Made by a program: the position numbers and the translations under genes. From Octopus sinensis (Eukaryota), in the NCBI RefSeq assembly GCF_006345805.1, contig NC_043009.1, positions 14,136,001 to 14,200,000 on the forward strand: a stretch of DNA of 64,000 nt, in the 5' to 3' direction. Below the pieces are notes generated by a model. It saw only the letters and a program-made list of their open reading frames with translations, had not been told where the DNA came from and did not search any database. This document shows, one piece after another, positions 46,401-62,742 of the stretch (position 1 is the stretch's first letter; the number at the start of each line of letters is the position of its first letter).

Positions 46401-49400
46401 ACTACTGCTGCTAATACTACTACTGCTACTGCTGCTACAACAACAACAGCAACAACAACTACTACTACTACTACTACTACTACTACTACTACTACTACTA
46501 CTACTGCCTCTACCGCCGCTGCTGCTACTGCTACTACTACTACTACTGCTACTACTACGAACTTTGAAAATATTTCGTTGATAATAAAATACTAATAGAA
46601 AACAATGAATTTTGTACTGCAATTGATGCACATTCTCTGATGGCAACGAAAATGGCGGTTAAAAATTGAAGAGGCATGACGATCCATTACTGATGTCTGT
46701 GAAATCTGTTATTCACAGAAAATTTAATTGTCACAAGATGTTTCACCTGTTCTAACAAAGATATAGAATTCAAAACTATCATGTTTAGTACGAAACTTGA
46801 GCGTCTCTTTAAAGAGATTTATAGCGATAAAAACGCAGGCCATCCATATAAAATTATTAAAAGGATCAAAAACCGAAAGTCCTCGCAGAGCCATTGGCTC
46901 ATAAGGACGCTTTCCCGGATTTCCTGTCGTGTATATATCTCATCAATTCGTAAAGACTAAACGTGATTATACTGCCTCCTTCATAAGCTCGTCTTCCTAG
47001 CGTTCATAATAATTTTTCTATCGTCTTGGCTTAACAGCCCTCACTGTTTGTTTTTACTGTTTTGTTCTCATTGTTCTGTTTTTTACTGGTTTTACTTTTT
47101 TATTGTTTTTACTGTTTTGTTCTCACTGTCCTGTTCTTTTTACCACTTTCACCCTCCGCAAGAAATCCCAAATTTTATTTAATTTGCTTTGCGGGAAGGA
47201 TTGTTTCAATGAAGTCGTGTCTTGTCTTTGCCTTCGTAACGCGGAGTAGTTGAAACAGGGACAACTGAAGAAGGAGAATATTCTTTATGTTGTATGTCTT
47301 GTTTCTCTGTTTGTTTTTTCCGTTGTTCGAAAAAAGTTCGTTTCTATGTTTTTGTTTTTATGTTTTCGTTTCTCATTGTGTTCAACGTTTTTTTGATGTC
47401 CTGCACCTATATATGCATATATATATACATATATATGTAGGTATGTATATGTATGTATATATGCATATATTTATATATTATTTATATTATTATATATCTC
47501 ACCACCCGGATGAGTCACCAGTCCATCGTAGTATTGTTCATATTCACCAGTTACCAGCATCGCCTTAATGGCACCTGTGCCGGTGGCATGTGTAAAAGAT
47601 TTGAGCGAGGTCGTTGCTAGTACCCCTTGACTGGCCCCGTGTCGGTGGCACGTAAAAGCACCCACTACACTCTCGGAGTGGTTGGCGTTAGGAAGGGCAT
47701 CCAGCTGTAGAAACTCTGGCAGATCAAGATTGAAGCCTGGTGCAGCCATCTGGCTCGCCAGCCCTCAGTCATTCGTCCAACCCATGCTAGCATGGAAAGC
47801 GGACGTTAAACGACGATGATGATGATGACGACCAGTTGAGCTGACTGGATCAAGTTAAAGGAAGTGTTCTGCTTAACAAGCAACGCAACGCCCGGTCCAG
47901 GAATCGAATCCACAATCCTTCAATCATGAATGGAACACATTAATAAGTCACGTGACTTCACATAGATTATTATTACATCACACTGGTCTAAGGTGATTAT
48001 CAAGAGGTAATTGGCTGAAAAGATTCCCAGGCTATTCTCGGCGATATTCCCAGGCTATTCTCCTTGGTGTCTGATATTTTCAGTGACATTTTACAGGAAA
48101 ATCTGAAACAGCATTTGAGGGCAAATCTTTTCTGAGTTATTTGGCACAGATCTTCTGAATAAGTAACTTTAAGAATTAACTATGTTTCTTGTTGATTGAA
48201 AGATGAAGATTTGTGACTCCATAACATTTCTGGAATTATGTCAAAATAATATTTTTACAATAAAATAAACCCAGTTATATTGGCTAAATAAAGTAAGTGA
48301 TTATGAATCTATTTGTCATTATCGGTTCTGTTCAAACTACTGGTCAGCGATTTGAATTTCAGATTTTCTGACTTAAAGGAAATGAAATTTGCATTTTGGC
48401 TAAATTAATTATTAGTAGAGGATTTATTTGAATTGGTAATATGGTACTGAGGAAATGTCTGAAATATGAAATGATGTAGTTATTAAAAGTATATTTTAAA
48501 AGAAGCCATAGCGTGGTTCTGTGATGCGAGCAAGGCTAATACACACTTTTTTGAAGAGAGGGAGAGAGAGAGAGAGAGGGAGAGAGAGAGGGAGTGAGGG
48601 AGAGAGAGCGAGAGAGAGATATATATAGAGAGAGAGCAACTGTTGCTATTTCTACCTCCTTTATTTAATGGAATGTGATTTTAGTGCAGTGAATTAATTG
48701 AGAAAAAAGAAAGGGAATGGGCATCGCAAAACGAGGTGACAGAATACCGAAGATAACTAAGTTAATATAACGGATCAATAGTTTTTTATAATAAACATCA
48801 AACACAAAGGTCTATGAAACTCGAGTTGATCAAACTTTGTGTTTGTATCTTTTTCTTTTAAAATATAGTGAATTTAAAGTGATACAATTTATTCGATATT
48901 TTTTTTTATATTTTAAAATTTTAACTTTTAACTGAAGTTTTATTTCAAAGAAATAATTTAGCTTTAGTCTACTTTTTTTACTCATATTTAATGGAATTCA
49001 TATTGAACATACTCATAGTATTGAAACTTAAAATTATAGCATACTGATCGCAAATTTGTACTTATATGATTTGATGGGTTGGGGAGAGGCTGTCACATTT
49101 TGCAAATGTAAGTATACAGTATGGTGCAAAGAGGTTGAAAATCACTGATTTTTCTCTAAATTTACCGAGCAAAAATTTTACGAATCTTTCCAATTTCAAC
49201 AGTTATTTTTAGTTGTTATACTCACCTGCTTTCAAGTTCATGAAGTTTTCCTGTATCACTGAGATTTAGAATAACCATTGATAAATCTTCTCGGTAAGTA
49301 GCTCCTGGTGGGACGGCAATACCAAAACCTTTCGGATCAAAACGGGGTCCGATCTCTGTTAATTCACAATCTTCAATCGATTTGTATCTACTCACTGTTG

Positions 49401-61400: not shown

Positions 61401-62742
61401 CTAAACATAGAGGGGACAAACAAGGACAGACAAACGGATTAAGTCTATTATATCAACCCCAGTGCGTAACTGGTACTTATTTAATCGACTCTAAAAGGAT
61501 GAAAGGCAAAGTCGACCTCGGCAGAATTTGAACTCAGAACGTAACGGCAGACGAAATACCGCTAAGCATTTTGCCCGGCGTGCCAGCGGTACAGCCAGCT
61601 CGCCTCCTTAAAAAGAAGGTACTATTGTCATTTGAATTATTGTCGTAATCCCATACTTCTCCTTATGTGCCTTTTTTTGCACTTCGTTCTCTTCCTTTTT
61701 CCTCCCCTCCTCCTCATTGTCATCTTCATCCTCATCATCACCACAACCATGACCTTCCTCATCCACAACATGACATGATTACAATCTCCATCACCCCATC
61801 GCCAACATACCAAGATGACAACAACCTCCTCTTCTCCTCATCATCAAGGGGCGTGGTATTTAATCTTTCTCGAAATTCCCCCGCCCCCCGATAAGGCCTT
61901 CACCTACTTTAATAGCAACCAAAGAGTGAACGTCTGAAATTTTTGAGGAATCCTAAATTGTTTTTCAAAACAGACGAGATGGAGACGACGCCTCGAATAC
62001 ATTTGATCAAGTCCTTTCGAGCAGAGCTGACCTGTGCTAAACTACAACGTGAACAACATGAATAGTACTGCCACCGTAACTACAATTACCACCATCCTGA
62101 ACAACATCAACAGCATTCTCGCCCCATCGTCACTCCAATACCAATATCATCATAGCCATTATATTCATCATCATCATCGTCATGTTGACGACGGCGACGT
62201 CGACGGCCTCCCCTACCATCATCATCATCATCATCATCGCCACTACCGCGGCCCGCGCCGCCGCAACGACCCCACTCCGTCTACCACAACCACTGCTGTC
62301 GCAGTCGTCAGTTATAATCGCTTTCCTCCTCGTCATATTCGTTATTATTGACAGTTGAATAATCAAATAAATTCTGACAGAAATTATAATTAAATGTAAA
62401 AATATGAACAAAATGAATAAATATAAAATTGAAAAGAAACAAAAAAAAAACAAACTGAAGAACACGGCAGTAAAACTCATTAACTCACCCACATCTTTGC
62501 GAATGTTTCGATTTTCGTATTCTTAAAGAAAGCCATGACACCACTGTTTTTGACAGTGCCGTATTTGATTTTGGTTTGTTTTGGAAGATCAGAAATTGTT
62601 TTGATGGGAGTATTGATCTTCTTCACTGTAAGGAAGGCAGCTAGATTAGCAGTGTACGAAGAGATGAGGATAAGGGCAAAAAACCACCAAGCGCTGGTAA
62701 GGATACGTCCGGGCACTGTGTTTGGGGAAGCATCTGTGTTTC
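40296..62742 (-). CDS. Ionotropic glutamate receptor family subunit, delta-like (partial multi-exon gene; 5' exons lie beyond the window end)
   Basis: Three exons with AG/GT boundaries and matching phases join to [40 protein letters not shown]...KMW|VQMAELDP...LESR|WWNNRMC...[26 protein letters not shown]. Contains the SYTANLAAF gating motif, S2 lobe and M4. Introns are 12,991 and 8,755 bp. Confidence 0.95.
41217..41495 (-). mobile_element. SINE family A with arms fused (core deleted)
   Basis: caccaccatcggttttc joined directly to gcctaccaaatccactcacaaggc with no microsatellite. Confidence 0.8.
42200..43260 (+). pseudogene. Penelope-like RT remnant (MGSxDGAE / GLYRDD-type lineage) interrupted by (TA)n tracts
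   Basis: [38 protein letters not shown]...[10 protein letters not shown]...KAGY. Confidence 0.7.
43270..43410 (+). mobile_element. 3' module of Neptune-like PLE with variant hammerhead-like motif
   Basis: tctttctgtcgaagagcgtaggctcgaagcgtaaaaga plus shared tail. Confidence 0.6.
44160..45640 (-). pseudogene. Neptune-like Penelope element remnant: GIY-YIG endonuclease and CA-rich 3' region
   Basis: Minus-strand [13 protein letters not shown]...[18 protein letters not shown]...RLHREQELI...YGLN, followed by an approximately 800-bp CA-rich tail. Confidence 0.75.
46220..46560. repeat. (CTA/CTG/CAA)n trinucleotide repeat
   Basis: Seen directly. Confidence 0.9.
47566..47830 (+). mobile_element. Short retroposon with RTE-like 3' end and (GAT)n tail
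   Basis: ggttggcgttaggaagggcatccagc...ccaacccatgctagcatggaaagcggacgttaaacgacgatgatgatgatga. Confidence 0.65.
49226..49497 (-). CDS. iGluR exon: S2 ligand-binding lobe
   Basis: Acceptor atttcag|GTT CAA ATG; donor AGC AG|gtgagt. 272 nt, phase 0 in, phase 2 out. Encodes [11 protein letters not shown]...[18 protein letters not shown]. Confidence 0.95.
51230..52450 (+). mobile_element. Neptune-like PLE partial tandem: hammerhead-like 3' module, then endonuclease C-terminus and CA-rich tail
   Basis: Motif at 51291-51326; [21 protein letters not shown] matches [14 protein letters not shown]...YGLN of the 44.9-45.1 kb copy. Confidence 0.6.
54300..55822 (+). pseudogene. Penelope-like retroelement (Naiad-like), RT plus C-terminal GIY-YIG, decayed
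   Basis: [57 protein letters not shown], CxxxxCxxC linker, NVVYSIRC...[25 protein letters not shown], spread over several frames. Confidence 0.9.
58055..58766. mobile_element. hAT/Charlie-like non-autonomous element
   Basis: Ends cagtgtttctcaacc ... aatgagaaccactg with subterminal catatggaccc/catatggacaccc; putative 8-bp TSD matches only 5/8. Confidence 0.5.
59700..59965 (+). pseudogene. RTE-clade LINE RT C-terminal remnant
   Basis: VEQF*YLGSSLS, then degenerate GRL...DLRSQT...AVVLS segments. Confidence 0.5.
61207..61605 (-). mobile_element. SINE family B composite (same architecture as 10822-11270)
   Basis: Shared junction gacgaaatacc|tatttctttact and shared alternative tail aaattttggggaag. 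Confidence 0.85.
62489..62742 (-). CDS. iGluR exon: post-M2 linker, M3 (SYTANLAAF) and start of S2
   Basis: Acceptor taacag|GA AAC ACA; donor ATG TGG|gtgagt. 254 nt, phase 1 in, phase 0 out. Confidence 0.95.

Follow-up and report, generated by a model that had tools for sequence, protein, structure and literature searches.

The 64,000-nucleotide stretch of Octopus sinensis analysed here (assembly GCF_006345805.1, contig NC_043009.1, positions 14,136,001 to 14,200,000; hereafter the window, numbered from its first letter) contains the 3' part of the annotated octopus "kainate 2-like" gene, which encodes an AKDF subunit of the ionotropic glutamate receptors (iGluRs) with the full architecture of amino-terminal domain (ATD), ligand-binding domain (LBD) and transmembrane domain (TMD). 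The gene belongs to a spiralian (mollusc and nemertean) AKDF lineage that is as far from the AMPA and kainate receptors as from the deuterostome Delta receptors, and its ligand pocket closely resembles that of GluN1. Taking this identity and the ligand together, we put the probability that its agonist is a small neutral amino acid (glycine, D-serine or alanine) at roughly 55%. Cephalopod receptor inventories and single-cell atlases depend on automated names, and a receptor named "kainate 2-like" would be taken in them, wrongly, for a marker of glutamatergic signalling if, as is probable, glutamate is not its ligand.

Four minus-strand exons join into a product of 246 amino acids, comprising M3, S2, M4 and a short C-terminal tail, which matches residues 558-803 of P0406 (Octopus vulgaris CAI9731618.1 / O. 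sinensis XP_029644262.1) at every position and O. bimaculoides XP_014768777.1 ("kainate 2") at 245 of 246. The annotated name of P0406 is "glutamate receptor ionotropic, kainate 2-like", as a reading made from the letters alone (the sequence-only reading) had anticipated of automated annotation. The window product matches Pfam PF00060 (Lig_chan, E=3.8e-26), and the full-length O. bimaculoides protein P0320 additionally carries PF01094 (ANF_receptor, the ATD) and PF10613 (Lig_chan-Glu_bd, S1) beside PF00060; with a Lig_chan pore, the SYTANLAAF gate and an S1/S2 clamshell, the gene is a member of the iGluR superfamily. The pore is canonical in the alignments, having Q at the Q/R site, Asp at +4 and an unbroken SYTANLAAF. 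For the O. bimaculoides protein, AlphaFold2 modelling from an alignment of 42 relatives reached a mean pLDDT (predicted local distance difference test) of 80.9 and a pTM (predicted template modelling score) of 0.67, and the top Foldseek matches of the model were full-length GluA2 and GluK2 chains with the canonical three-layer iGluR architecture; such a fold search confirms the architecture, and ligand class lies beyond its discrimination.

Ligand pocket and phylogenetic placement

Pocket residues were equated by HMMER and MAFFT alignments and are given in GluA2 mature numbering. The rat GluA2, GluK2, GluD2 (S1-M4) and GluN1 references agreed 100% with their PDB chains, save for the edited Q/R site of GluA2, and the GluD1 reference (S2-M4) received one correction after the PDB comparison. 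Octopus residues 653-655, 704-705 and 732 were read from the window, and residues 450, 478, 480 and 485 from the annotated protein. The GABA (gamma-aminobutyric acid)-gated receptor of the starfish Acanthaster planci, AcaGluD, is represented by P0460, whose numbering (E475/V548/S712-714/W762-D763) agrees exactly with the published AcaGluD. The ten positions, in the order 450, 478, 480, 485; 653-655; 704-705; 732, are as follows.

GluA2: Y P T R; G S T; L E; Y
GluK2: Y P A R; G A T; M E; Y
GluN1: F P T R; S S V; W D; F
GluD2: Y A T R; S A V; W D; Y
Starfish AcaGluD (P0460): Y G V R; S S L; W D; Y
Octopus: F P S R; S G V; W D; F

The G653-S654-T655 of GluA2 aligns with S-G-V in the octopus gene and L704-E705 with W-D, which upholds, against PDB-verified references, the earlier claim of G/V at the S654/T655 equivalents and W-D at the E705 equivalent. 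Over the ten positions the octopus gene differs from GluN1 at two, GluD2 at five, AcaGluD at six, and GluA2 and GluK2 at eight each. It lacks the AMPA/kainate-type pocket (G653, S/A654, T655, E705): among 78 AMPA/kainate representatives, W704 and D705 were found in none and E705 in all, G653 in 76, and T655 in 70, the other eight having S. The Delta-type lower lobe (S/T653, non-polar 655, W704, D705) is present in the octopus gene, as it largely is in the Delta-clade representatives (S/T653 and W704 in 10/10, D705 in 9/10). The glycine-type pocket of GluN1 (F-P-T-R/S-S-V/W-D/F) is identical at eight of ten positions, the shared residues being F450, P478, R485, S653, V655, W704, D705 and F732, and the differences T480S and S654G.

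The Delta-like signature proposed by the sequence-only reading thus holds for S653, V655, W704 and D705, and the octopus gene also shares with Delta the Q at the Q/R site. The pocket as a whole is nearer to GluN1 than to GluD2; the octopus gene has F450/P478/S480/F732 whereas Delta has Y/(A,G)/(T,V)/Y, and it is without the vertebrate GluD loop insertion in S2. Two further motifs that had been called GluD-like, AWWFFALI and a YRD-containing stretch at 49261-49296, are not Delta-diagnostic: the two Ala of AWWFFALI fit the claim, but its WWFF core is AMPA/kainate-like, and GluK2 also has YRD..IL.L.

HMMER was run exhaustively against 1.84 billion representatives; the 150 best relatives, together with PDB references, entered bootstrapped neighbour-joining (NJ) trees with simple distance corrections and a single NMDA outgroup (GluN1). 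In pairwise comparison, the window region has 43% identity to GluA2 (200 bits), 40% to GluK2 (191 bits) and 38% to GluD2 (154 bits), and the closest PDB sequences are the AMPA receptors GluA1-4 (~43%). True invertebrate AMPA/kainate receptors have 50-68% identity to GluA2 or GluK2, and the relatives of the octopus gene ~40% to both. The window-region tree (228 columns, 151 sequences) recovered an AMPA+kainate clade at 82% with the octopus product outside it, where it grouped at 94% with proteins of scallop, Babylonia, Elysia and Batillaria. An S1-M4 tree (386 columns, 143 sequences), in which O. bimaculoides P0320 stood in for the full-length protein, placed the gene outside both a 96% AMPA+kainate clade (80 sequences, all of the G653/E705 type) and an 84% deuterostome Delta clade (10 sequences: vertebrate GluD1/2, amphioxus, Saccoglossus, Asterias), and within a 99% spiralian clade of molluscs (chiton, bivalves, gastropods, cephalopods) and nemerteans. 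Tree and pocket both speak against an AMPA or kainate receptor, a reading that was rejected. Mean identities are nearly equal among the three lineages, namely 36.6% for spiralian-Delta, 37.7% for spiralian-AMPA/kainate and 37.5% for Delta-AMPA/kainate. The gene is not a member of the NMDA subfamily either, given its ~33% S1-M4 identity to GluN1, below that to any AKDF group, Q rather than N at the Q/R/N site, and AKDF-like M3-S2 and other linkers; its GluN1-like pocket is therefore either convergent or an ancestral retention.

The residues themselves are strongly constrained. In the 36 members of the clade that were compared, which represent chiton, bivalves, gastropods, cephalopods and nemerteans, S480, R485, W704 and D705 each occur in 36/36, as does V or I at 655; F450 is found in 35, F732 in 34, S653 in 33 (T in three) and G654 in 33 (A in three). 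Against a background in which mean column identity to octopus is 68% and 15% of S1-M4 columns are invariant, this near-invariance favours a conserved specific ligand over a decaying site. The source names of the members are all AMPA/kainate-type automated labels ("glutamate receptor 1/2/4-like", "kainate 2/3-like", Aplysia "glutamate receptor 8"). The GABA-gated starfish AcaGluD is likewise auto-named "glutamate receptor ionotropic, kainate 2-like" in RefSeq, from which it follows that automated labels are unreliable for AKDF receptors other than AMPA and kainate.

The candidate class names are protostome Delta, Phi/Zeta or a new one, the Delta and Phi references in the trees being deuterostome Deltas and amphioxus Phi, to the exclusion of CraGluD, the Ramos-Vicente mollusc "Delta" sequences and echinoderm or hemichordate Phi. 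The mollusc sequences labelled GluD1-2_Cgi/Aca in the Ramos-Vicente set (XM_011429946, XM_013079949) are, judging by RefSeq numbering, probably not the direct orthologues XP_011426148 and NP_001191669. A large search with the starfish Delta, whose matches were dominated by vertebrate GRIK1, returned no mollusc Delta candidate. The sequence evidence does not support assigning the octopus gene to Delta. The amphioxus Phi reference GluF1_Bbe (Ramos-Vicente alignment) fell outside the spiralian clade. The marks of the Phi class are grouping with deuterostome GluF and the lack of Q at 586 (Ramos-Vicente, 2018); the octopus gene has Q586, R485 and W-D, unlike amphioxus GluF1/GluF2, the only labelled Phi references compared, which are without R485 and W-D. 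The scallop candidates for molluscan "Phi/Zeta" have G or V at 653, in contrast to octopus S653.

Several parts of this picture are already known: the gene is annotated, mollusc AKDF receptors outside AMPA/kainate have been described, and non-glutamate AKDF receptors (Delta, and glycine-gated receptors of placozoans and cnidarians) are established, so that the octopus gene opens no new category. For Greer et al. (2017), an Octopus "GRIK2" was an orphan and Aplysia GluR8 an AMPA receptor; Aplysia californica GluR8 (NP_001191669) is a direct gastropod orthologue, identical at 10/10 pocket positions. Zeng et al. (2021) described Phi (GluF I-IV) and a mollusc-only "Zeta" in 21 molluscs, three octopods among them, and proposed some as glycine binders by the 653/655 rule (PMC8437780). 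A lophotrochozoan phi clade, mollusc and annelid delta homologues, an uncharacterised "group II" and a protostome AKDF clade that shifts between trees were reported by Singh et al. (2025; PMC12226733), and non-AMPA/kainate AKDF receptors were described as still largely uncharacterised (Wang et al., JGP 2026; PMC13520880). Seemingly unstated before is that this particular pan-molluscan and nemertean clade bears an almost exact GluN1-type pocket.

Candidate agonists and competing explanations

In the iGluR LBD, R485 and an acidic residue at 705 bind the alpha-carboxylate and alpha-amine of the agonist, and S654/T655 bind the gamma-carboxylate of glutamate. The classical glutamate-excluding determinants of GluN1 are V689 and W731, which remove contacts and fill space. 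The octopus subunit would take part in a tetrameric cation channel, its hallmarks (SYTANLAAF, Q at the Q/R site, the +4 Asp) being intact, with a clamshell that retains the backbone anchors for an alpha-amino acid in R485 and the acidic 705. With Val in place of T655 and Ser in place of G653, its hold on the gamma-carboxylate of glutamate would be lost, and W704 would occupy the gamma-carboxylate sub-pocket, as in GluN1. Given these changes, small neutral amino acids such as glycine, D-serine and possibly alanine would be the likeliest agonists, and not glutamate.

This proposal agrees with published signatures. Under the 653/655 rule, G653/T655 predicts glutamate, and S653 with a non-polar 655 predicts glycine (Ramos-Vicente, 2018; PMC6307864). 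The octopus lower-lobe residues are of the glycine/D-serine type by this rule and by the αF-GST and β10/αI-LE motifs (PMC13648236), which supports the glycine/D-serine half of the earlier proposal; for its GABA half, the six differences from AcaGluD speak against the match. In GluA2, the GST>SSV or GST>SAV changes lower glutamate potency and shift preference to alanine, glycine and D-serine (Wang et al., 2026; PMC13648236). Gene identity, exon structure, residue equivalences, placement outside AMPA/kainate and pocket conservation are direct results, and ligand class, channel competence and homomeric or heteromeric assembly are inferred; at sequence level the reading of a receptor that is not glutamate-gated and is mislabelled kainate is supported, owing to its GluN1-like pocket and its position outside AMPA+kainate, the latter as the sequence-only reading had expected.

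Several points weigh against a small neutral agonist. In AcaGluD and a placozoan AKDF receptor, the αF and β10/αI positions alter potency and not always selectivity, and agonists can differ between closely related receptors (PMC13648236). GABA gates Deltas of invertebrate deuterostomes and acoels, binding residues alone do not fix GABA versus D-serine selectivity, and the oyster CraGluD, the only protostome "Delta" tried, gave no currents (Rosano et al., 2024; PMC10861852). The upper-lobe residues come from the annotated protein, and the trees are NJ trees rooted on one NMDA sequence, in which the deep branching order among the spiralian, Delta and AMPA/kainate lineages has divided support: in a four-cluster bootstrap with three distance corrections, spiralian+AMPA/kainate was obtained in ~48%, Delta+AMPA/kainate in ~47% and spiralian+Delta in ~5% (13-15/300).

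An excitatory GABA-gated cation channel, like the invertebrate Deltas AcaGluD, SacGluD and DioGluD, is in our judgement unlikely, although S653 and W704-D705 are common to the octopus gene and GABA-gated Delta receptors such as AcaGluD (P0460), and D705 is the chief partner of the GABA amine in docking (PMC10861852). Some mollusc receptors also stand at the base of Delta in published maximum-likelihood trees, and GABA is also an agonist of some Epsilon receptors and of a placozoan AKDF receptor of the glycine type. However, octopus F450, P478, S480, G654, V655 and F732 stand against Y, G, V, S, L and Y in AcaGluD (6/10), the Delta clade (84%) does not include the gene, and the spiralian+Delta grouping has the low bootstrap share just given, so glycine or D-serine appears a better guess than GABA. 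Still less probable is a divergent AMPA/kainate-like receptor gated by glutamate, in line with the annotation and with the "AMPA" label of Greer et al. for Aplysia GluR8. It could appeal to the GluA1-4 sequences as best PDB matches, to the retained R485 and acidic 705, to GluN2, which binds glutamate with Asp at the 705 equivalent, to some ctenophore receptors that bind glutamate with S/T653 (PMC6307864), and to the grouping of Aplysia GluR8 with AMPA receptors (Greer, 2017). But W704, D705 or a non-polar 655 occurs in 0/78 AMPA/kainate representatives, the gene is outside the 96% AMPA+kainate clade, the GluA2 GST>SSV and GST>SAV mutants are drastically less glutamate-potent, and its ~40% identity to GluA2 is far under that of true invertebrate AMPA receptors (55-68%).

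A different kind of alternative, compatible with any of these ligands, is that the subunit binds a small ligand and forms no stand-alone channel, acting as an obligate partner (as GluN1/GluN3) or, in the manner of vertebrate GluD, as a synaptic organiser that is mostly non-conducting. A pocket like that of GluN1 is reminiscent of a co-agonist subunit, CraGluD expressed alone showed poor surface expression besides no current, and vertebrate Deltas bind D-serine without conventional gating; on the other side, the octopus subunit has a fully canonical pore and gate (Q at the Q/R site, Asp at +4), and homomeric function is common among invertebrate AKDF, Epsilon and Delta receptors (PMC13520880). 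We regard this alternative as unlikely, though less so than either GABA or glutamate gating.

The small-neutral-agonist reading may extend to the clade as a whole. It was tentatively hypothesized, as a possibility well short of an even chance, that its members (octopus "kainate 2-like", Aplysia GluR8, oyster "GluR4", scallop "GluR2-like", nemertean "GluR1-like") are spiralian-wide excitatory glycine/D-serine-gated cation channels that arose within AKDF independently of GluN1/GluN3. If so, molluscs, cephalopod brains included, would have fast excitatory glycinergic or D-serinergic transmission hidden under "kainate/AMPA" names. The clade combines an AKDF scaffold with a GluN1-like pocket that molluscs and nemerteans conserve, and orthologues such as Aplysia GluR8 are already cloned; it would allow an inexpensive and well-defined test of pocket signatures as predictors of iGluR agonists, and could reveal whether excitatory glycine/D-serine signalling exists in spiralians.

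Gene structure and transcripts

The window is AT-rich (~36% GC) and repeat-rich, and the exons and motifs of the gene within it are listed below (minus strand; a slash marks the splice junction).

62489-62742, minus strand: exon A, residues 558-642 of P0406; acceptor cag/GA (phase 1), donor TGG/gtgagt; located by tblastn with orthologues
62669-62692, minus strand: AWWFFALI, exon A
62633-62659, minus strand: SYTANLAAF gating motif, exon A, M3, intact
62537-62560, minus strand: GTVKNSGV, exon A
49498-62488, minus strand: intron A-B, 12,991 bp, repeat-rich, with decayed retroelement-like open reading frames at 54272-55630 (plus strand)
49226-49497, minus strand: exon B; acceptor tttcag/GTT, donor AG/gtgagt; residues aligned to verified references
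49402-49419, minus strand: YAFFWD, exon B
49261-49296, minus strand: the YRD-containing motif of 12 residues, exon B
40296-40470, minus strand: exon C; acceptor cacag/A, donor AAG/gtaatg; tblastn 100% to P0320 residues 733-791
34746-34784, minus strand: terminal coding exon, ENRTRRNKSNYI and stop codon; ttttgcag acceptor; exact C-terminus of P0320/P0406

Exon A encodes the post-M2 loop (GNTDASP, with the +4 Asp), M3, the M3-S2 linker and the start of S2, including the helix F selectivity codons for S653 (62545-62543), G654 (62542-62540) and V655 (62539-62537). The remaining S2 is encoded by exon B, with W704 at 49407-49405, D705 at 49404-49402 and F732 at 49326-49324. Exon C comprises the S2-M4 linker and transmembrane helix M4 and ends in VMHLGK, and the 3' untranslated region runs on toward lower coordinates after the terminal coding exon. 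Besides intron A-B, in which tblastn with orthologues found no iGluR coding homology, the introns measure 8,755 bp (B-C) and 5,511 bp (C-terminal exon). The interval 49226-62742, to which the sequence-only reading was confined, has as its exact limits the 5' end of exon A and the 3' end of exon B, and the gene reaches further. Exact look-ups of the exon A and exon B open reading frames in public assemblies returned no record, and the species was recognised by way of a search with the Pecten orthologue. Chance matches in open reading frames are ruled out as the source of the quoted motifs by the canonical splice sites and the 100% identity to the annotated protein. No ATD, S1, M1 or M2 exon was found in 62743-64000 by tblastn with orthologues, and the 5' two-thirds of the gene therefore lies beyond position 64000.

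The octopus introns interrupt the coding sequence at LLQ/GNTD and KMW/VQM (junctions 62742 and 62489/49497). In bivalve and gastropod genomic contigs, the part between the ends of S1 and S2 is called as one unbroken open reading frame of 274 amino acids (P0003, P0004, P0425 and others), so the intron content of this gene varies among molluscan lineages. A decapodiform orthologue, in a cluster with Sepia pharaonis, has an intronless 802-amino-acid open reading frame on contigs of 2.5-3.9 kb in RNA-seq assemblies of runs SRR3011300 and SRR21372859; these contigs are spliced mRNAs and document expression. The sole difference from O. bimaculoides is at residue 662 (49440-49438, codon CTA), which is Leu in the window and in O. 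vulgaris/sinensis versus His in O. bimaculoides, with Glu in Argonauta; two base substitutions are needed, so it represents species divergence and not adenosine-to-inosine editing.

Repeats and intronic elements

Intron A-B carries three overlapping frameshifted open reading frames at 54272-55630 (plus strand) with reverse-transcriptase-like and GIY-YIG-like motifs, which look like a decayed Penelope-like retroelement; Pfam returned no match to them at E<=0.01. A repeat of ~330 bp resembling a short interspersed element (SINE), with an internal microsatellite, has at least 10 diverged copies (69-85% identity), which lie in either orientation within the introns and downstream of the gene.

4209-4590, 6406-6790, 8297-8618, 8946-9072, 11528-11643, 16500-16690, 17074-17250, 20092-20514, 21077-21604, 41286-41482 and 62950-63420: SINE-like repeat copies

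Microsatellites make up ~7% of the window, for example at 6670-7712, 19550-20222, 44100-45700 and 46220-46660, and include a ~1 kb block of the ACAT/ATGT type, long runs of trinucleotides and, at 44-46 kb, a CA-rich block with a GC skew of +0.39.

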